Made by a program: the position numbers and the translations under genes | Notes under the pieces: generated by a model | The model's input: the letters and a program-made list of their open reading frames with translations, nothing else | The model's database searches: none | Told to the model about the DNA's origin: nothing | Source: Phaeosaccion multiseriatum | Taxonomy: Eukaryota; Protista; Ochrophyta, other classes | Assembly (NCBI GenBank): GCA_965112735.1 | Contig: OZ218964.1 | Coordinates: 2,170,001-2,234,000, forward strand | DNA length: 64,000 bases | Reading direction: 5' to 3' | In this document: positions 42,363-57,600 of the stretch, piece by piece | Layout of the letters: every line of letters begins with the position of its first letter | How positions within the stretch are numbered: position 1 is the stretch's first letter

Positions 42363-42643
42363 GGCGTGGAAATGATGCAAATTAATTCAATTCAACTTTG
42401 CCGTCCGGTCCTCAGCCAGTAATCAATATATATTACACCCTTAAGCCAGTGTGTCGCATGTTGGTGGTTCAATGGCTTCTGTGAGCCGCCGCATTCCACA
42501 ATAAGTCAATTGCCCATCCATTTTCACCGAGCTATACCTCCGAGTCGTCCAATTTCCCCCTACTATCCACGTCGTACTCCCTTGATCACAAAGCCAATCA
42601 AAGAGTTCAGGCGACCAAAAACCATATGCCAAGAAGGGGCAAG
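42363..42643. promoter_or_regulatory. Probable bidirectional promoter between the thioredoxin-like gene and the annexin gene
   Basis: ~280 bp, repeat-free and AT-richer than the surroundings; CCAAT motifs near 42549 and 42594. Confidence 0.55.
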
Positions 42644-45600
42644 ATGGGTGCTGGCGCCAGTGTGTGCGAGGCTTCTGAAGCAGGTATGCTGCTTGACTGC
42701 TTGCTTGACTGCTTGAAGTGCAAGGTTGCTGCTGCGACTGCCCAATTGGACAGCCTCCGGCGGAAGAGAAAGGAGGAAGACGGGGAGAGGACGTCATGGA
42801 GGGAGGGAACAAGCATGAAGAGGAGGTTGTAGCCGCCTCCTAACCGTTCTGTAACTGTTTCCTCTTCCTTCCCTCTCCTCCTTCTTCTCCCTGGCTCTTG
42901 GTGTCTATTCCCCTTCTTCTGCTGTACAGTGGCGAATCGGCGCAGCAATATCATGGAAAGCGAGAACGACGCCGAGCAGCGCGTGGCAGAGATCCAGGAA
43001 TGCATCGAAACCATCACCGTCGAGAACAAGGTGAGCGGCACTTGGCCCGATCCTCACTCGGTTCAGCCGAAAGTCGTACAAGGCTTGGGTATCTCCCTCT
43101 GCCGCTGCTTAATGGTTCCTCCTGGCAAGCAGGCACAGCAAAGCGTAGCTCAGAAAATGGGCCGATGGGCCGAGGCTGCCTGCTCCTGGCAAGCTCCTCC
43201 TCCTCCTGCTGGCAACTGTCTCTCCCCGCCCCCCCCGCTCCTGGCCACTGCTTACTCTGTCCCCGCCCCCCCCGCCTCCTTGTGGTTCATCTCAGGATAT
43301 CAAAGAGTTCATCGCGACTCGAGGTAACCGACTGGAAGGAGATAGGAAGGAGATAGCCTCTCTGCTACCACATCTTCTCCCTTCCCCACTCACTCACTCA
43401 CTCACTCACTCACTCGTACCCCCCCCATACAGACGCCGACACGGTGCGCGAAGCGTGTGAGGGCCTTGGTACAGACAACAGTCAGCTCATCGACGCGCTC
43501 TGCTCGCGGACCAAGAGCCAGCTCAGTGCCGTGGACGACATCTTCCGAGAGAGATACGAGAAGAAGCTTGGCGACCAGGTGGGAGAGAAAGGAGATGGCA
43601 GTGGACGGGTGGACGGGTGGCAGGAAGAAGGCCGGAGGGCATGAAGGTGGGCACCGTGCAGGCATGCATGCGAAGAGGAGGACGGGGTGGGCCTCTCACG
43701 CTATGAAGATGGCACTGGATGGGCGCGGGTGGGTGGGCGCCCCTCCCCTCCCCTCCCCTCCCTTTCCCGCCCATCCCCTCCTCCACCCACTCCTTCTCGG
43801 CTCAATCTCAGTCACTGACATACTGTGTGTGCTTAGGTCAAGGCCGAGGTGAGCGGCAATTTCAAGAAGCTGGTCTACTACGCCCTGCTCGAGAAGCACG
43901 AGTTCATGGGTAAGTCAATGAAGAGGAGAGGGATGACGACACTCGATGGCTCTCTCTCTCTCAACCCCTGTCTTCGTTCCCTCACTCCCCTGGGGTCTCC
44001 CTCTCTCTGACCCCCCTCCCCCCCCAACACACCTCTCACAGCGCTGATGCTTGACAACGCCTTCGACGGCCTCGGCACCGACGAACTTCGTCTCATGGAG
44101 GTCCTGCACACCTCCACGTAAGTCATTAATTAAAAAGATAAGAGTACGTAGGGATTACGGCTCCACCCTGCCATACAGTGCCATCTCTGCCATCCATCTG
44201 TGACTTCAGCAGAGGAAACACCCACCTCTTGCATCTCTTGGCCCGCTCTCACCCCTCCACTCTGCTTCCCTCCCTCCCTCAACTGGCAGCAACGAGGAGA
44301 TCCAACAGATGAAGGCCCACTGGGAGGGCAAGCACGACTCCTCCCTGGTGGACAAGATGACGTCCGAGGTGTCAGGATCAACTCGCACGCTGCTCCTTAA
44401 CCTTCTCAAGGGAGAGAGAGACGAGTCTGACGAGGTGGGTGCGTGGGTGCGTGTGTGCGTGGGTGCGTGTGTGCGTGTGTGCGTGGGTGGACTTGCGGTT
44501 GCAGATTCTGTTGACCTAGTGAGGAGTGAGGAGTGAGCAGAGGCGAGAGAATAGTCCTGTTCAGGCAAGCAGTGGTCTATCCTCCTCCTCCTCATCCTCC
44601 TCCTCCTGTGTGATTACCACCTGCTGCCGTTGTATCACCACCTGCTGCTGCTGCTACTGCTACCGCTACTCCTGCCCCTTCTTGTGCACCCGTCCCCACC
44701 TCACCTCCCCAAAACTTCTTCCCTCTGCGGCAACTTGCCGTGGTGTCTCTCTGCCTCCTCTATGTGTGTGTGCCAAGGTGGATGAGGAGAAGGCCGAGGC
44801 CCAGGCAGATGAGCTCTACGCCGCCGGAGTGGGCAAGAGGTAAGCTTGGCCAAACAACTGAAACTGCAGCAAGCAAGCAAGCAAGCAAGCAAGGAAAAGC
44901 AAGCGATAAGCTGCACGCAGCTTCCCGCACGCACGCGCCCGCGTTGTGTGTGGCATCACTCCGTAGACTGCCTTCCATCCCTGAGCAGAGCTGCTCAGCT
45001 ACCGCAGGCCCTCTGAGTGCGCCTTCGCGGATGGCAGTGGATGGATGAGCCTCTTCTCACTCGTCTGTGCTCTCTGCCCCTGCCCCCTCTCCCGCCCCAA
45101 CCCTCCCTCAGGCTCGGCACCAACTCTGGGCCCTTCCTGGACATCCTCACCTCCTCGTCGTACGCGCAGATCAAAGCCATCTGTGAACAGTACGAAACGA
45201 AGCACGAGATGTCTCTCAAGAAAGGTGCGAGACGAGCCAGGAGAGAAGCAGGGGATGGCAGTGGATGGGGGGATGGGACTTCCTTCTTTCTTGTCTTCCT
45301 TCCTTCCTTCCTTCCTTCCTTCCTTCCTTCCTTCCTTCCTTCCTTCCTTCCTTCCTTGCTTGCTCCCTCCCTGCCTGCCTCCCTTCCCACCAGCCAACCA
45401 ATCAACCAACCAACCTCCTCCCCCTCACCCTTCCCAGCCATCGGCAAAGAGTTCGGAGGCACCACTAAGCACTGCCTACGCGGGCTGCTTGAGGACCCCG
45501 CCTCCTTCCTCGTGCAGAGGCTCAAGGACGCCCTCAAGGGACTGGGCACCAACGAAGACGCCGTGTGCCGCATACTCGCAGGCAACGACAGGCCCTATGT

Positions 45601-48600
45601 AGCCACCCTCGAGGAGAGATACAAGGTCGGTGGGTAGAGGCGTATGGGGGAATGGGGGGGGGTAGAGGCATATGGGGGTTGGGTGGGGGGTGGGTGGGAG
45701 GGTAGAAGCATCAAGGGGGTGGGAAGAGGCCTGTGGAGGATGGGTAGAGGTATATGGGCATATGGTGGGCTGCTGGTGATGGGTGGGCACAGGCCTTGGG
45801 GCGTGGGTAGAGGCATATGGTGGGGTGGTGGTGGTGGATAGGAAGATTGATATGTGCGGTGGTGAGGGGCATGGAGGAGCATTACTGTAGCCTCACCCCT
45901 TCCGATTGTCTCACCCGCCCGTCCGGTGCCATCCTCCAACGCCTGTGTGAGTAGGACAAGTACGACGAGGACCTCGAGACCGTCATCAAGAAGGAGTGCT
46001 CGGGCTACTTCAGAGACGCCGTGCTGGCCTGGCTTGATCAGGCAAGTGCAGAGGGCAGCGAGTGGGCACAACGGAAAGGAGCCTCTCTTCTCTCTCTTCC
46101 CGACGCCGTTTTGAAGCTTGGCCCACCCTTCCACTACACCTTGACACATTTGTTGGTTGTTGCTGCTGTTGCTATGGCTGTCGTCGTCGTCGTCATCGCT
46201 GCTCTTGGTGTTGTTGTCGTGCTCACACACAGGGCTCCGACCCCACTGGCGGGCTGGACGCCATCACCTCCTCCCCCCTGCCGGAGAGCGATGACCCCGA
46301 GGAGGCCCTGGGGCTGCTCGACGAGCGACTCTCTGTGCTGCTCACGGAGAACACGAATCTCAAGGACCACGTCGCTACTGTGAGTGCTGAGGCAGTTGGT
46401 GATACAAGCTGTGAGAGTGATGCGTACTGTCCCTGCCACTCACCACTCCCCACTTCATGACCACTCTCACTCCACTCACTCCCGCCATCCCTCGCCCCCA
46501 TCTGTCAGGTGGATGCCCAGATGATCCACGACGCGTGCCAGGGCATTGGCACCAACGACAGGAAGCTCGTCAGGATCCTCTGCTCGCGCACCAAGCGGCA
46601 GGTAAGGGGTGTCAGGACTGAGAGAGAGGGGGTGTCAGGACAGAGAGAGGGGGTGTCAGGACAGAGCGAGGGGGTGTCAGGACAGAGAGAGGGGGTGTCA
46701 GGACAGAGAGAGAGGGTGTCAGGACAGAGAGAGAGGGGGTGTCAGGATACACCCTCGACTATCCATTCCACGTCATCAATCTGCTCCCTTAACTCGTGCC
46801 TGCCCATGTGCACGCCCATATGCCTGCCCATATGCCTGCCCATATGCCTGCCCATATGCCTGCCCATATGCCTGTCCATGTGCCCGCCCCTCTCCTCTCA
46901 GTGCGAGCGCATCGACGAGGAGTACCGCAAGCTCTTCGAAATGACCCTCAGGGAACAGTTACAGAAAGAGCTCTCCGGCGACTACCGCGTGAGTCATTGA
47001 GTCACAGATGGCCGTAGATGTGCAGATGGAGGAAGTCAGTGGGTCAGGGGAGGGATGGGTGAATGGATGGATGGGTGGGCGCGTGTGGGCGTGTGTGCGT
47101 AATGGATATCCCAGTACGAGACTTGGAGTGTTTCTCTGCCCCTCATATTGCCCCTCCCATCCCCCTCGGTCCCTCTTTCCTCCTTCCCGTGTTGTATATC
47201 CAGAAATTCCTTGTGTATGGACAAATGTCCCACGAGGAGTTCGATGCCCTGATGCTCAAGGAGGCCTTCTCCGGCCTAGGCACCGACGAGAGACTCCTCA
47301 TTGAGATCCTCACCACAAGGGACAACAACCGGCTTCAAGCCGCCAAGACCTACTATGAGGGTGAGGAGGGAGGGGGGGAGGGATGGGGGGAGAGGGTGGA
47401 GGGGTGGGAGAGGGGGAGGGGGGGGGGGGTGGAGGTGGTGGGGGTGGCCATGCCAGAGCCGTCCTGCCGCCTGCCTTTTCTAACTCTCTCTGTCTCTCCC
47501 TCCCAATCTCTCTCTCCCTCCCTCCACCCCCTCCCTCTCCTCCCCCCCACCCCCGCCACTGCTCCTCCTCAGACCGCTTCGACGAGTCGCTTCTGGATAC
47601 TCTCAACTCGGAGAACTCGGGGTCCCTGGGAAGCATCTTCCGCGGGCTGCTGAGCGGCGATCGAGCCGAGGACAAGGATGAGGAGGATGAGGAGGAGGCC
47701 GACGCCATCTGTGACACTCTCAATGAGGCCGCCTCCGGGTTGGGCACGGACGAGGCTCCTTTTGTTGATACACTCACCAAGACAAGCCGCAGCATGATCA
47801 AGGTGAGTAGTGTGTATTGTGTATGTGTGTGTGTGTGCGTGCGTGTTTGCGTGTGCTTGGGGTGTGTTTGGGTGGGTATGTGGGTATGTGCGTAAATGTG
47901 CACGCACTCACACACGCTCCACTACAGCACAGCAGCCACAGCTCCCTTCGACCCTCTTCCGCTCCTGTACTTCCTCCGATTCACGTGTGAGTGAGGGTCA
48001 CATGTTCTCAACAGCACGGCCCTCCATGCCCCTCCCCCTCCACTGCCATCCCCCTCCACTGCCATCCCCCTCCACTGCCATCCCCCTCCACTGCCATCCC
48101 ACCCTCCTCCTCCAGCTGGTGCAGAGCAAGTACGAGGAGAAGTTCGAATGCAGCCTGTCCCGCGTGGTGGACAAGGAGTTCAGGGGCAACACCAAGGAGG
48201 CCCTGCTGGCGCTGCTCGCCTCCCCGGAGGACTACTTCTGCAGGAGGATCAAGAGGGCCGTGGGCAAGACCTTCACAGACACCGGTGAGGGAGGCGGGCA
48301 GCAAGGGGGAGAAGAGAGTGATCAGCTGCTGTTATTGATGGTTGTTTGACCGCATTGTGTTCACTCCAGCAATCCAATGAGTCGTTACGTAAGTGAGTGG
48401 AGGTCCTCCCTCCCCGTATGCCTCTAACATGCATCACCTCTTTCTTGCTTGCTTGTCTAGGCTCTGTGACGCGCATCCTGGGGGGAAGTGACAAGCACTT
48501 GGCCATGGCCATCGCCGCCCGTTACGAGCAGAAGTACGACCAGGTGAGAGGGAGGGAGGGGGGGCAGGAGCGAGCGAGCGAGCGAGGGAGGGAGGGAGGG

Positions 48601-51600
48601 AGTGAGGCATGGGCGAGGGGGGACAGGAGGGAGGGAGGGAGGGAAGTAGGGAGTGAGGGAGGGGGGAGTCGCACTCATTCCAGGGGCAGAGCTGAGGCTT
48701 GCCACGAGGCTTGCCAGCTCTGCAAGATACTTTTCTCTGTATTTTCTCTCCTCTCTCTCCCCCTCTCTTTCTCTCTGGAGAATACACAGAGATTTGATGC
48801 CTCTCTCATCCCTCCCCCCTCTCTTTCCTTATCAGATGCTCACTGCTGACATCAAGAAGGCTTGCTCCGGGCACCTTCGCCGGGCCGTGCTGGCCTGGAT
48901 CACAGAGCTCGACCCCACCAAGGTGAGCAAGTTGGTCATACACACATGTGTGACACATGAGTGCGTTGGTGATTCGGGAGTCATCTGATTGACACAAAGC
49001 GCGTGTGCGTGCGTGCGTGCGTGTGACGAAGCATGGCGTGCCAGCTGCTGTCTGCTCCTCCGTGGGGTCGGTAGAGGTTCCCTTGTGGCCCGTCGGCTTG
49101 CTAACCATCTTACCATCTTTCATCACCAAAGACGGCTTGCTAACCATCTCTCTTCAATGGATGGATGGCACTAAATGGCACCGCAGGGACAGGAGGAGGT
49201 GACGCTGGAGGCGGAGGAGGAGGAGGAGGAGGAGGAAGCTGAAGCCGAAGCCGAGGAGGAGGTGCGTAACTATCAATCTATCTATCTGTCTCACTTCGAA
49301 CATTGAGCTTACGTAACTTGCGTACCTTGAAGACCTTGCGTAGTTCATTCTCATGTCGCACATAGGCCATTCCTGAGACAATCCAATGTCGAGCTTCAAT
49401 GTCGAGCTTCAATGTCAAGTTTCAGTACGCAATGTCGATCAATCCTCAGCCGCGATGTTTAGTTTCGATGTTTAGTTTCGGTGTCTGGTTTCGATGCCTA
49501 TAGTTTCAACGGCTGCTCGTCCCTTGCCCTGATCCTTCTCCCTCTAGCTCCTCCCCCTTATCCCTCCCTCCCTCCCTCCCTCCCTCCTTCCTTCCTTCCC
49601 TCCTTCCTTCCCTCCACCTCTTCCACTTGGCTTGCCACAACAGGAGGAGGAGCCCGCAGAGGAGGAGGAAGAGTCCGCTGGTGACGACGCGGAGGAGGAG
49701 GAGGAGGAGGAGGTGGAGGAGGAGGGGGAAGACGCCGAAGCACGTCAGCTCGAGGAGGAGCTGGAGGCCGAGGTGACGGATGAAGCCGAGCTTGAGAGGC
49801 TTCAGAGGCTGAAGGAGCAAGCTGCTGAGGAGGTGAGAGAGGGGGGCAAGGAGGGAGAAGGAGAGGGGCAAGGAGGGGAGAAGGAGAGGGGCAAGGAGGG
49901 GAGAAGGAGGGGAGAAGGAGAGGGCAGAAGGAGAGGGGGGAGGGGCATTGGCTGACTCGAACGCGCCTCTCCCGCTGTCTTGTCGAGTGGAGTGGAGGGA
50001 GAGCCAAATGGATTGTGCGACTCGTTGAAACTCGCCCTTGCTCGTGCTGTATCACCAATCGCTGTATGTATCTTGCTGTATCACCAACCGCCAACCGCTT
50101 ATGTATCTTGCTGTATCACCAACCGCTGTTTGCATCTTGCTGTATCACCAACCGCTGTATGCATCTTGCTGTATCACCAACCGCTCTATGTATCATGCTG
50201 CACAGAAAAAGGCAGAGAAGCAGCGCATGAAGAGGCAGGCGCAGAAGGCCAAGAGGGTGAGTACGTGACGAGGGGGTGTCAGGACTGAGTGAGTAGGGGG
50301 TATCAGGACACAACCTGGCTTGACTTGGGCCTCTGAGTGGGGCTCTTCCCTGTGGGCGAAGTAGGGTAGGGCGCCTTTGCTTAGGTGTGGCCCCTCGTGT
50401 GGCCGTCTTCGCTTGGCGCTCCTCCCCCCCACCCTTCCTCGCTTCATCGGCCCGCTCCTCGCCTGTGACGCTTGGTTGCTTGGTTACTTCACCTCGCTCC
50501 CTTGACACACTCACGCACGCACCCACCCCTCAGGCCAAGGACAGAAGGGCAAAGGAGAAGAAGGTCAAGATGAGGAACATGGCAGGACAGGTACATAAGT
50601 CAATGGGTGTGTAGAGAAGTCAAAGGGTGTGTGCGTGTGCGTGTGCGTGTGTGGGCATGTGTGTGTACGTGTGAGCACTACTCGCTGACGACGCCCCTCC
50701 TCTCCCTTGCGAATGTGACCCGACTCATCCACTGCCATCCAACGGTTACAGAAACGCGTGGTGCAGTTCAGGAAGCAGACCCACATCGCCCCCCTGACGC
50801 CCCTGACGGTGTTCGGACAGTTCACCGACGAGGGCTATGTGGCAGCCAATCCGGACCTCGAGATCGCAGAGGACAGCAGCGGCTGGCAGCAGTTCTGGTG
50901 AGTGGCACGGGGGTGGAGCTCGGGTGCGGTGGGGTGTGGTGAGAGAGAGAGGAAGTGGGCTGGGCTCCCTTTCCTTTTCCATTTCCTTCCAACTCTACCT
51001 GTTCCTGTGTGCTGCCTTTGCCCCTGACAAAGCAAAACCTGTCTCTCCCCGTCCCACCTTCCCTCCCACGCCCCTGTCCTGACACCCCTGTCCTGACACC
51101 CCTGTCCTGACACCCCTGTCCTGACACCCCTGCCCTCCCACCCTGCCCTGCTGCCCCTGTCCTGCAGGAAGCGCGGCTTCTGGCAGGGCCGCTTGGTGCA
51201 GCTGACCAACGAGTACGGCTGCTTCCAGGGCTTCTTCTCTCCTCAACTCTACTGCGATACGCTGGAGCTTCCCCTTGAGGAGGAGGACTCCCCCAAGTGG
51301 AAGCCGCCCGAGATGGTGGGGTGGAGCCACTTTCAGCATGGGGGCAAGGAGGAGGGCACACCCCTTCCCATCCTCAACCCCTTCCCAATGTAAGTACCCC
51401 TCTCAAAGAAAAAGAAGCCCGGTTTTGTCTCTCTCCCCTTCTACCCCTCTTCTTCTCCCCTTCTCCCTCCCTCTCCCCTTCTCCCTCTCCTTCTCCCTCC
51501 CTCCCTCCCTCCCTCCCTCCCTCCCTCCCTCCCTCCCTCCCTCCCTCCCTCCCTCCCTCCCTCCCTCCCTCCCTCCCTCCCTCCCTCCCTCCCTCCTTGT

Positions 51601-52886
51601 CCCTCACCTCCCCCTTCTCCCCCCCTCCCCCCCTCTCCCCCTCACCCCCTCACCCCCCTCCCCCCCCCTCCCTCCCGCTCTGCAGCTACGTGGTGGGCAA
51701 GTTCAACCCCAACAAATACCTCAACAGGTACCCCGACGCGAAGCTCGCAGGGGGCAAGCCCAGGCCCGGCCCCTTCGATGAGGAGTGGTACAAGAACACG
51801 TAAGTCTCTCCTCATCCTCAGTTTGTCGCCAGGCAAAACATATGTTCACGTGTTGTAGTCGCCCCTCTGCTGACACCAGTCGCCAGGCCATGTTGAGGTG
51901 GCGCAATCCCTACCATAGCCCTCCTTGCCTGTTTCCCTGATACGATACATTCTCACGGACTTCCTCTGCTCCTCCGTCCCCACTGCCACCCCACATCAAC
52001 TGCCATCAACTGCCATCCACGGCCACCATTCACTGCCATGCTCTACTGCATCCACGGCCACGCCCTGCCATCCACTGCCATCCTCCCTCCTTCAGCTACA
52101 TGGACGGAGAGGGCGACTCTCAGGACGTGTTGAATCACTTCAAGGAGAACAGACAGGCCGACATCAAGGTAAGCAAAGTCGTCCTTCATGGACTTACTGT
52201 GCCGGCGTTCTTCATTGACTTATTGATGTGCTTGTTGTCTCCTCTCCAAACCGGCTTCGATTCATCGGCCCTCACCACCACCACCATCACCACCACTACC
52301 AACCAAACCCGCTCTCATTACGACGGCTACTCCTCCAACCATCCTCCTCCTCCACCACACTCAGGCGGGCGGCGCGGTGGGCAGGTTCAACAAGAAGTTC
52401 TACAAGAAGAAGCACCTCAAGCCCAGGCCGTTCCACCACTACTTCAGGAAGGGCTTCAAGAAGCACGTCAAGATCAAGGTCAAGAAGGGACCGCCCCTCA
52501 CGGCGCACCAGCACTTTGTGCAGGTCAGTGTTGAGGTGGAGGCATACAGGCATCGAGTGGGGGGGATGGCAGTGGGTGGTTCAGCTTAGAGGAAGAGAGA
52601 GTGAGAGAGAGGGAGCCCTCCCCCTGCGTGCCTCGCTTGCACCAATGAACATGTATTCCCTCAGACTCAAGACTCAAACGCAAACTGCTGCATGTCCGTC
52701 CCCATACACCTCCACCCATCCAACGCCCCCTTCCCATGGGCCTCCACCCTCCCCTCCCTCCAACGACAGAGGGGCTCTGACCGCACGCTGACGGTGAGCA
52801 ACGCCCTCGGAGTGTTCGAAGGAGTCTTCGACCCGGAGACGTACTGCAAGCTGCACGGTAAGGAGGACAGCACACTGGCACTCAGA

Positions 52887-52936
<50 letters not shown>

Positions 52937-53393
52937 CTGCTGGGTACACGTTGTGGGAAGTGAAACCGAACCCTTCTCTGCTGCTGGGCAGAGCTTGCTT
53001 GCATAGGACAGGGCCACCCTTTCCCCTTGGTTGTACTCTCGCGCGTCTCTCATCTCTGCTTCTCTCCCTTCCCTTCACACCTCCCCCTCCGCCCACGCGT
53101 GTTGGTCATCCGCCCCTCCACTCACAGGCTGCGACGACGCCCTGGCCCACTTCGAAAGCGAGGGCTTCTACTCTGGCGTGGCCTTCCCCCTGAAGAACGT
53201 CGTCGCCAAGACACTGCACTTGGACACTCTCACGTGTGACACGCCGCCCGCTGAGGAGGAGGAGGACGACGAGCTCGAGGCCGACAGCGACGAGGAGGAG
53301 GAAGATGATGATGATGATGAGGATGATGATGATGATGATGAGGAGGAAGGAGATGATGACGAGGGCGAGGACAGCGGCGAGGACAGCGACTGA
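42644..53393 (+). CDS. Eight-repeat (double-tetrad) annexin with N-terminal MGAGAS, acidic/basic linker, C-terminal FDxxxYxxxxPD/HF..G repeats and acidic tail
   Basis: ~30 exons: 42644-42683, 42930-43030, 43296-43323, 43433-43578, 43837-43909, 44042-44117, 44290-44434, 44778-44839, 45112-45223, 45438-45625, 45955-46041, 46233-46379, 46509-46601, 46902-46988, 47204-47360, 47573-47802, 48116-48284, 48461-48543, 48836-48922, 49187-49261, 49644-49832, 50206-50256, 50534-50590, 50752-50897, 51168-51388, 51686-51799, 52096-52168, 52365-52523, 52770-52857, 53128-53393 (TGA). Annexin repeats: EGLGTDNSQLIDALCSR, DGLGTDELRLMEVL, KRLGTNSGPFLDIL, KGLGTNEDAVCRIL, QGIGTNDRKLVRILCSR, SGLGTDERLLIEILTTR, SGLGTDEAPFVDTL, GKTFTDTGSVTRIL. 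Confidence 0.92.
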
Positions 53394-54648: not shown

Positions 54649-57600
54649 ATGCAGAAGAAAACCGCCCCGATGACAGGCAGCTCATCTGGACGCAAGTCCA
54701 AGAAGCCGGCCAATAAGAAGGGCAAGCCTGTGGTCTTCCAGCAGCCCCCCCAGCCTCAGCGGCCCACAAACTCCGGGGCCAACGCATGGGCGGCACTCGC
54801 AGGCTCCTCTTCCTCTACTCAGAGCGCAGGCTGGGGGGCAAGCCATCCGCCGGGACAACCCCAGGGCCATCAATTCCCCCCCATGCCTGAGCCTCTGCGC
54901 AGTGCGGGGTCAGGGTGGGCGGCAACCCCTCCACCTCACCATACGAATCGCGTCCCTGGCCATGCCCAGCCCTGGCCTCCTCCCCACCCCGCCCCCCCTC
55001 TTCAGCAGTACGCCCCTATGCCCTACACATGGGGAATGCCGCAAGCGACAACCCAAATGGGCCAAATGGGCCAAATAGGGCCACACATAGGAATGGGAAT
55101 GCCCCCCGCCCTGCCCGTGCCCCTGCCCCTGCCCCTGCCCCTGCCGCCCCCCCCCGACTACCCCGTGTACTCGGATGAGCGTATCGCTGCCCTCTGCATG
55201 CAGGGCTTGGGCTTGGGCGTGGGTGTGGACCTGCTCAGGGACAAGAATGGGGTGTCCGTCACACAAGCAGGTACGGCAGGTCTTGGCATGCCAGGTCCTG
55301 GGTGTTCCTGTGTGTGTGTATGTGTGTATGTGTGTGTATGTGTGTGTATGTGCGTGTGTGTGGATCCTGTCCAACTCTCACCTTTCATCCGAGGAGAGAG
55401 AGAGACACACGCCCCAGGCCATAGCTCATTACCCGAACTGTCCCGTTCCTCCCTCTCTTCCTCCCTCCCTCCCTCCCTCCCTCCCTCACTCCCTCCCTCC
55501 CTCCCTCCCTCCCTCCCTCCCTCCCTCCCTCCCCTCCTCCCTCCCTCCCTCCCACCCACCTCCTTTCCACCCCCTCCTGCCCCCCGTCTCCCCAGTGACA
55601 GCAATGGCACCCCATGCGGGGCAGAATGGCTCGCGCTCAAGCCCCGTTTCTGCTGCAGCACCCGTGAAACAGCAGCAAGTACAGTACCAGGAGAAGGCGT
55701 TTCCACCCCTGGGCAGTGAGAGCGGCACCACTTCTACGGCCATGGCCGAGCGTGAGCGTTTCACCCTTGACTTTGGAAGCATTGCTATTCGGGAAGTGGA
55801 AGTAGCGGGGCTTCTGAATCGAGGAGGGCAGGAAGGAGGAGGAGGAGGAGGAGGAGGAGGAGGAGGAGGAGGAGGAGGAGGAGGAGGAGGAGGCGGAGAA
55901 GTAAGAGAGGAAGAGGCCCCTTTGGGGTACGCCCCTGTGCGGGAGCAGCGAACGGCCATGGGAGGCGTGACGGCGGAGCAGCTCGAAGGAAAGCTCCTGA
56001 AGTTGGGTATCGCACCGGCCCAAGGAGAGGGGGGGCACATGGGAGCAGAGGGAGAGAGGAGGGCAGAGGAGAGGACGGAGGCGTTTGTGGTGAGGAACCA
56101 CGGGACCGGCTTTGTGAGGCTTAGAAAGGTGAGGGACGGGGACGTGTAAGGCCGACTTTTTGAGGGGCTGCGGAAAGAAGAGTGAGGGAGCGGGAGAGAG
56201 GCAGGAGAGGGAGTGAAGAGAGAGAGAGGGCGAGGAAGCCTTAGAGAGAGAGGTTGAGAAGCCTTTGAGAGAGAGGGTGAGGAAGACTCAAAGAGAGAGG
56301 GTGAGGGTGAGGAAGCCTTAGAGAGAGAGGGTGAGGAAGCCTTAGAAAGAGAGGGTGAGGAAGGCGTATTTCTGTTTGCACTCCCACTCCCACTCCCGCC
56401 CACCGCGTAATTTCTCCCTCTCTCTCCCTCTCTTCTTCCCTCCCTTCCCCTCTCCTCTCTCCCGTCTTTCATCCTCCTCCTCCTCCTCCTGATCCTCCTC
56501 CTCCTCCTCCTCCTCCTCCTCCTCCTGTTGAGGGCAGCTCCTCTTTGTGTCTGATGGGGTATCGCCTTCATCTGCTGCCATCGACCCCCACTTTGAGGTG
56601 AGAGTCAGAGGGAAAGAAGGGAAGGAGGGAGAGGGAGGGGGAGGGAGAGGGAGAAGGGAGAAGTGGGAGGATGGAGGGAGGAGGGAGTGAGGGAAAGAGG
56701 GAGGGAGAGGGACAGAGGGAGGGAGAGGGACAGGGAGGGAGGGAAGGAGGGAGGGAGGGAGGGATGGATGGCGGGAGGGAAGGAGGGAGGGAGGAGGGGG
56801 CTAGTAAAGCAACAGATAGTTGCAGGAGAGAAAGGACTGAAGAGTAAACAGGCTGAAAGTGCCCCCTCTCCTCCCCCTCCCAAAGGTACGCTACCAGGCG
56901 GACGTGCTGACGTCACCCCCCCCAGGGGAGGAGCTTCCCCTGTGGGCAGACGGAGGGACCTCAGAGGTGGTGCTAGGGCCGGGTGGGGGCGCGTGCGTGT
57001 TGGTTATCCGCACCAAGCCACAGATGGCACTGGCCTTTGTGGAGAAGAGGCTGCTGCTCGTACTGCAGCGCCGCTCGCCAGACTCGCAGTGCAGACCTTT
57101 CGACGACACGGGTAAGGGATGGCAGTGGATGGGCAGGAGGGGAGGGAGGGAGAGAGAGAGGATGGCAGTGGATTGGCAGGAGGGGAGGGAGAGAGGATGG
57201 TAGTGGATGGGCAGGAGGGGAGAGAGAGAGACTTGCAGTGGATTGGCAGGAGGGGGAGAGAGAGAGGATGGCAGTGGATTGGCAGGAGGGGAGGGAGAGA
57301 GGATGGCAGTGGATGGGCAGGAGGGGAGAGAGAGGATGGTAGTGGATTGGCAGGAGGGGAGGGAGAGAGGATGGCAGTGGATGGGCAGGAGGGGAGGGAG
57401 AGAGGATGGCAGTGGATGGGCAGGAGGGGAGAGAGAGAGGATGGCAGTGGATGGGCAGGAGGGGAGAGAGAGAGGATGGCAGTGGATTGGCAGGAGGGGA
57501 GGGAGAGGATGGCAGTGGATGGGCAGGAAGGGAGAGAGAGAGGATGGCAGTGGATGGGCAGGAAGGGAGAGAGAGAGGATGGCAGTGGATTGGCAGGAGG

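Follow-up and report, generated by a model that had tools for sequence, protein, structure and literature searches.

The sequence analyzed here (the window) is a 64,000 nucleotide (nt) stretch of Phaeosaccion multiseriatum DNA, contig OZ218964.1 of assembly GCA_965112735.1, positions 2,170,001–2,234,000 of the forward strand; coordinates below are those of the window. The window has a GC content of about 0.59 and is eukaryotic DNA with many short introns. On the + strand, at positions 42953–53393, there are 29 coding exons that, joined by hand, give a stop-free frame of 1162 amino acids (aa), starting with the ATG at 42953 and ending with the TGA at 53391–53393. The predicted protein displays, in order, eight annexin repeats, a 124 aa charged linker, six units of a repeat that resembles a bacterial sequence, and a poly-acidic tail. 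An earlier note on this DNA had drawn attention to positions 50752–53260, which correspond to the segment from the first C-terminal exon to the start of the poly-acidic tail. The six peptide units quoted there are present at that place on the + strand and are joined by canonical introns.

Coding segments were taken from stop-free frames and were then joined by a search for frame-compatible GT-AG pairs; the N-terminal exons and an exon between the two annexin tetrads were found by a codon-bias scan. The splice sites of the 29-exon model are GT-AG, with one GC-AG exception, and the introns range from 109 to 467 nt in length. The GC content at third codon positions (GC3) is 0.74–0.96 in all 29 exons, the four linker exons included, compared with a GC content of 0.59 in the introns. 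The coding log-odds of each exon is positive in the proposed frame alone. Intron windows, which served as the baseline, have a mean log-odds of -0.46 per codon with the 95th percentile at 0.01.

The annexin core is encoded by two groups of + strand exons. Tetrad 1 (repeats 1–4) comprises eight exons, at 43433–43578, 43837–43909, 44042–44117, 44290–44434, 44778–44839, 45112–45224, 45438–45625 and 45955–46041, with GC3 values of 0.79–0.96. Tetrad 2 (repeats 5–8) comprises seven exons, at 46509–46601, 46902–46988, 47204–47360, 47573–47802, 48116–48284, 48461–48543 and 48836–48922. Both tetrads were delineated by the splice search, by matches to the Pfam Annexin family (PF00191) and by Ca-site motifs. 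Between them is a probable 49 aa inter-tetrad exon at 46233–46379 (+ strand; acceptor CACACAG/, donor /GTGAGT), which is stop-free, in phase 0 at both ends and has a GC3 of 0.86; this exon may be alternative.

Seven exon pieces match PF00191, with E-values down to 8e-11. Three fragments score above the 25-bit cutoff (42.3, 38.6 and 35.9 bits) and the rest, which are partial repeats, score 17–22 bits. There are eight G-x-G-T-type loops, at residues 46, 118, 203, 275, 344, 416, 500 and 572 (numbering of gene model 2), which agrees with the count of eight annexin repeats in the earlier note. Seven of the eight repeats have a type II Ca site, i.e. a (G/R)-x-G-T-[DN] loop with a Glu at T+39. Repeat 8 is degenerate; its loop is KTFTD and an Ala is found in place of the acidic ligand. 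The protein core is a double-tetrad (octad) annexin. Because the canonical type II site is kept in seven of eight repeats, the octad core should bind acidic phospholipid membranes upon a rise in Ca2+.

The linker that follows the core has 49 Glu among its 124 aa and consists of a poly-Glu segment and then a K/R-rich stretch, the acidic-then-basic order that had been noticed before. The acidic part is encoded by + strand exons at 49187–49261 and 49644–49832 (canonical splice sites, GC3 0.80 and 0.76, log-odds 1.04 and 0.73 per codon) and the basic part by + strand exons at 50206–50256 and 50534–50590 (GC3 0.88 and 0.79, log-odds 1.13 and 0.91 per codon); all four are in phase 0. An alternative acceptor at 49548, which would lead to translation of a CT-rich tract, was dropped, and the acceptors leading to exons at 49187 and 49644 were preferred. 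At the other end of the C-terminal region, a direct reading of positions 53244–53393 (+ strand) gives a poly-acidic tail of about 48 aa, mostly Asp and Glu, followed by the TGA codon. With Pfam this tail shows low-complexity noise alone, below threshold. The charged segments of the protein total about 170 aa.

The repeat array is encoded by seven + strand exons at 50752–50897, 51168–51389, 51686–51799, 52096–52168, 52365–52523, 52770–52857 and 53128–53393, with the array itself extending to 53243. It was defined by self-similarity, by a hidden Markov model (HMM) of bacterial units and by hhalign. The array is approximately 290 aa long and is made up of six degenerate copies of a repeat of about 38 aa. 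Units start with the motif G-x-F-x4-Y, at DNA positions 50815, 51229, 51696, 51768, 52380 and 52821, and most of these starts are followed by a (H/W)-x-H-F/Y...G element. The best local alignment of the array with itself scores 65, compared with 31.9 +/- 4.9 in 200 composition-preserving shuffles, none of which reaches 65 (z about 6.8), and an alignment of the exon pieces displays the common unit. The C-terminal units are related to each other beyond chance.

Conservation of the individual units is uneven. The complete motif, F-x4-Y-x3-NPDL...QF...G..QGR, is kept by unit 1 alone. In unit 2 an acidic insertion takes the position of helix 2, and in unit 3 helix 2 leads directly into the sequence GGKPRPGPFD without a third helix, which mirrors the EGRxPxPLFD junction between bacterial units. 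Unit 5 contains many K residues as well as two H-[YF] elements. The F and Y residues are present in all six units and H-F/Y in five, with Q-F at this location in unit 1. N-P-D is found in unit 1 only (unit 3 has Y-P-D), and E-G-R is reduced to QGR or EEG. Distances from one unit to the next are irregular, i.e. 48, 57, 24, 40 and 65 aa. Six host-type introns interrupt the array, three of them between units and three within units, and the codon bias is that of the host; because of these two properties, the array is neither contamination nor a recent insertion. The earlier description of the array as fully intronised thus agrees with the gene structure.

A degenerate DNA pattern for the motif NPDV...H[YF]xxxGxxEGR was scanned against one genome per bacterial and archaeal species. 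This gave at least 120 loci, from Alphaproteobacteria, Cyanobacteria, Acidobacteriota, Planctomycetota, Verrucomicrobia and others. The translated loci show tandem repeats with a period of 38 or 42–46 aa and the consensus PSPLFDTAYYLAANPDVAAAGVNPLEHYLTYGWREGRDP, i.e. FDxxxYLxxNPDVaaAGxxPLxHYxxxGxxEGRxP. A profile of 473 bacterial units gives 35.2 bits over 7 domains on the C-terminal 308 aa of the algal protein, where the best of 2000 shuffles gives 8.2, and it has no match on the annexin plus linker part. The scores of single algal units with the profile are low, 1–12 bits. When the six algal units are compared with 60 bacterial units by hhalign, the probability is 97.4% (E-value = 1e-11) and columns 3–39 align with columns 3–39. 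A second hhalign comparison, with exon pieces only, gives a probability of 95.0% (E-value = 3.7e-8), with columns 20–59 aligned to 3–38 and the order kept. Across the window, the two top matches of the bacterial profile among 1656 six-frame segments are exons of the array (E-values of 5.9e-4 and 0.031), and segments outside of the annexin-repeat gene have E-values above 1. Because of the HMM score, the two hhalign alignments and this specificity within the window, the similarity is taken as very probable homology. The units match one another and the bacterial FDxxxYLxxNPD...HY/F...G..EGR repeat, a resemblance that the earlier note had proposed.

The bacterial repeat appears in proteins of diverse type. 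Some bacterial proteins carry single units rather than arrays, and in arrays the period is 36–46 aa. The residues Y, D, H, G, E, G and R are invariant across 60 bacterial units. Pfam partners of the repeat in bacterial proteins are Methyltransf_24, GT1/GT4, GH26, alkaline phosphatase, Calx-beta and RTX. An AlphaFold2 model of four units from one bacterial locus (L007), made with 25 aligned arrays, has a predicted local distance difference test score (pLDDT) of 95.7 and a predicted template modeling score of 0.89; the predicted fold is a helical solenoid with three helices and a short bridged loop per unit. No fold match to this four-unit model was found by Foldseek against the PDB, nor by VIA-align across 48,161 chains. 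In the ESM Atlas its structural neighbors (template modeling scores of 0.73–0.93) belong to clusters that are 95–100% bacterial, and these are hypothetical proteins or proteins with methyltransferase, GT2, GT61, HAD or PPC/subtilisin domains.

The DNA pattern together with an AAT variant was also found in more than 230 IMG/VR contigs, among them two giant-virus metagenome-assembled genomes and contigs of 137–390 kb. One giant-virus protein (L256:6560–7686, - strand, IMGVR GVMAG-M-3300027892-69) has five units together with a ricin-type beta-trefoil lectin domain (PF00652, E-value = 7.5e-10). The collected repeat loci are designated L001–L120 for bacteria and L121–L342 for IMG/VR, e.g. L007:1931–2392 (- strand) and L003:95–898 (+ strand). 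The contexts named in the earlier note are borne out by these data: the RTX-like and glycosyltransferase contexts by the partners GT1/GT4, GT2, GT61 and RTX/Calx-beta, and the occurrence in giant viruses by the two viral genomes and the long contigs. The repeat was also correctly called uncharacterised. Pfam, at E-values up to 10, shows nothing on the seven algal exon pieces (the noise in the tail excepted) or on pure bacterial arrays, NCBIfam has no match for the repeat, and no PDB sequence matched the bacterial profile at an E-value below 0.1. A PDB match to a TIC40/STI1-like sequence, NPDVA, at an E-value of 0.38 was dismissed as noise. Literature on annexins of stramenopiles or brown algae and on NPDV repeats gave nothing relevant. 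The repeat is an accessory, non-catalytic module of proteins that are often glycan-related, and it appears to constitute a separate, undescribed domain family of bacteria, phages and giant viruses. From its distribution, horizontal acquisition by the alga from bacteria or giant viruses would be plausible.

The explanation that we favor, and which we consider probable, is a single gene of about 29 exons encoding an octad annexin, a charged spacer, a degenerate bacterial-type array and a poly-Asp/Glu tail. That all exons lie on one mRNA is quite likely, because of the coding signal in the linker exons, the short gaps and the consensus donor at the annexin end. The non-coding gaps from the annexin core to the array are 264, 382, 373, 277 and 161 nt, alike the other introns of the gene, and leave little space for a 3′ untranslated region (UTR), a promoter and a 5′ UTR. 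The last annexin exon, ending at 48922, terminates in a consensus donor (AAG/GTGAGC) in phase 0, and the exon at 50752 opens in phase 0. In four DNA sequencing runs from one sample and study, which is possibly the source of the assembly itself, contigs tile the stretch that begins with the final annexin exon and reaches into the first exons of the array, interrupted only where there are simple repeats; the final annexin exon shares a single contig with the first exon of the linker, and the basic linker exons share one with the exon that opens the array.

Several observations weigh against the single-gene explanation, and with them its alternatives have to be considered. The region could hold two adjacent genes, an octad annexin that ends just past 48922 and a charged repeat-array gene that begins at the ATG at 49175 (MAPQGQEE...) or at ATGs within the exon 50534–50590; these ATGs are in frame and could serve as starts. 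Annexins normally end at the last repeat. The search of sequencing runs gave four runs with the locus, all of them DNA that reads through the introns, with no RNA run and no splice joints; the listed “joints” in these runs are simple-repeat artefacts. Because the linker introns are all in phase 0, with a chance in-frame join of about 1/3 per junction, continuity of the frame is weak evidence by itself. However, GC3 and codon bias of the coding type persist across all four linker exons, and the annexin core ends precisely at the consensus donor. The unspliced frame past 48922 stops at 48986–48988, so that the distance from this stop to the ATG at 49175 is less than 200 nt, and the largest of the gaps is 382 nt. 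Such gaps are too short for a terminator, a promoter and UTRs in a region where the next long + strand open reading frame (ORF) is more than 1.2 kb beyond the stop codon. Two genes are therefore unlikely.

The state of the array also counts against the favored explanation and bears on two further alternatives. The units are badly worn, with spacings of 24–65 aa, one helix lost and a very K-rich unit 5. AlphaFold2 on the exon piece 51169–51387, with an alignment of paralogous exon pieces only as input, gives a moderate pLDDT of 69.6; helices appear at the positions expected for helices 1 and 3, a placement as in the bacterial unit that is suggestive only. A phmmer search with the same exon against 1.84 billion representative proteins found no ortholog, the protein of the alga's own genome being absent as well, and its four matches are unrelated repeat proteins with scores inflated by multiple stretches. 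A feature search of the ESM Atlas gave no usable match. In addition, a binding role for the array would be drawn from the domains that neighbor the bacterial repeat. The array may thus be part of the one gene and yet be a decaying relic without a binding solenoid, and the C-terminal half, with about 170 aa in charged segments, would then act mainly by charge; through these segments the protein could bind Ca2+ or polyanions with low affinity, be directed to the nucleus or inhibit its own annexin core. This is rather improbable. The key F, Y and G residues are retained in every unit and H-F/Y in all but one, there is no frameshift or stop over the seven exons, and GC3 and codon bias mark the exons as coding sequence in use. 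At the other extreme, it is doubtful, to a like degree, that the array is a working solenoid that binds glycans or wall precursors, captured from a bacterium or giant virus, with the protein as a Ca-switched tether that links membranes with matrix or polysaccharide, e.g. for the plugging of wounds or repair of the wall. The likeness to the bacterial repeat could also be due to convergence, or to a motif match by chance within a lineage-specific region of low complexity that was duplicated locally. The units are short, only about eight positions bear signal, single units score 1–12 bits, and phmmer on representative proteins and the ESM Atlas feature search show no intermediate eukaryotic relatives. 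On the other hand, the summed HMM score greatly exceeds the maximum of the 2000 shuffles, the two hhalign comparisons keep the order over 36–37 columns, beginning at F-D and finishing at E-G-R, the junction of units 3 and 4 parallels the bacterial one, and the profile singles out the annexin-repeat gene alone in the window. Convergence or chance is thus very unlikely.

If the single-gene explanation with a homologous array is adopted, the most likely reading of function, offered with low confidence and by analogy, has three steps. A rise in Ca2+ would bring the octad core onto acidic membranes. The 124 aa charged spacer, as a flexible tether, would keep the array off the membrane, and the array, as a non-catalytic binding module, would recruit a partner to the annexin-bound membrane. 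Since glycan-handling domains are found alongside the repeat in bacterial proteins and in one viral protein, the most plausible candidates for this partner would be glycans, components of the wall or matrix, and proteins that act in polysaccharide metabolism, for instance during the repair of wounds or membranes. Low-affinity binding of Ca2+ or polyanions, or autoinhibition, may be further contributions of the acidic tail and the basic stretch.

Certainty is lowest at the N-terminus of the 29-exon model. A probable exon 1 at 42953–43030 (+ strand) begins with the ATG, encodes MESENDAEQRVAEIQECIETITVENK and ends in the donor AAG/GTGAGC; its log-odds is about 1.0 per codon, its GC3 is 0.76 and its phase fits exon 2. 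The small exon 2 at 43296–43323 (+ strand), which encodes DIKEFIATR plus one base, connects exon 1 in frame with the first of the annexin exons and is the sole candidate with a positive coding score and correct phases in 43031–43432. Weak points of the model are these two small exons, the AAG acceptor at 44777 and the GC donor at 46042. The latter belongs to the GC-AG intron 46042–46232, which has the classical donor context CAG/GCAAGT and separates annexin repeat 4 from the probable inter-tetrad exon. Another N-terminal candidate, MGAGASVCEASEA at 42644–42683, is myristoylation-like but was dropped with a coding score of -0.26 and a GC3 of 0.46. Upstream of the gene, the ORF start MPRRGKMGAGASVCEASEA at 42626–42683 displays an MGxxxS myristoylation-like motif and a usable donor and has a negative coding score. 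It could be an upstream ORF in the 5′ UTR or an alternative first exon.

The introns and the flanking region have some additional features. The 11-mer GTATCACCAAC is present in 11 copies in the window, with none expected by chance. Four copies, about 29–35 nt apart, are at 50078–50181 within the linker intron 49833–50205, one is at 46395–46405, and the others are at six further places. Intron simple repeats are a (CCCT)n run of about 120 nt at 51470–51640 and a 21-nt tandem repeat, GGGGTGTCAGGACAGAGA-like, at 46602–46760; depth spikes in the DNA runs indicate that such simple repeats are common across the genome. Approximately 1.2 kb past the stop codon, a + strand ORF of 356 aa that is rich in P, Q and G is found at 54649–55719, and this may begin the next gene.

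Eukaryotic annexins are described as having a variable N-terminus and a core that ends the protein. Vertebrate annexin A6 is comparable to the algal core: a single chain contains eight PF00191 repeats, which form two tetrads joined by a connecting segment, and the type II Ca sites are canonical. Unlike annexin A6, which ends at repeat 8, the algal protein continues for about 480 aa with the charged linker, the array and the acidic tail. The algal octad is likely to have arisen by a duplication independent of annexin A6. In bacterial annexins, a single annexin repeat or a small number of them is fused to enzymes or to transmembrane regions (PMC3894181), so that annexin repeats are likewise combined with unrelated domains in one polypeptide; however, the algal protein is from a eukaryotic host, has a full octad core, and its partner is a repeat array. 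Compared with the unnamed repeat of bacteria, phages and giant viruses, the algal array keeps the motif order over the whole unit and, like it, is placed at the end of a protein as an accessory that is presumably non-catalytic. The bacterial arrays are regular and well conserved, whereas the algal units are irregular, with insertions, a deletion and six introns, and whereas the bacterial repeat is joined to a transferase or an RTX protein, the algal array is joined to an annexin.

According to a review of bacterial annexins (PMC3894181), additional domains had not been described for the eukaryotic ones, in accord with the earlier view of this architecture as undescribed, and the combination of an octad annexin with a repeat array is new for annexins. 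An octad annexin with a tethered array would extend the picture of eukaryotic annexins as an N-terminus plus a core. If the array proves to be a working solenoid, this would be the first case of a folded accessory domain in a eukaryotic annexin, and the protein would open an experimental route to a repeat that is very widespread in prokaryotes and viruses and is without a family entry, a solved structure or a fold match in the PDB. The fusion in the alga adds a clue of context, i.e. membranes and calcium, to the function of the bacterial and viral repeat.

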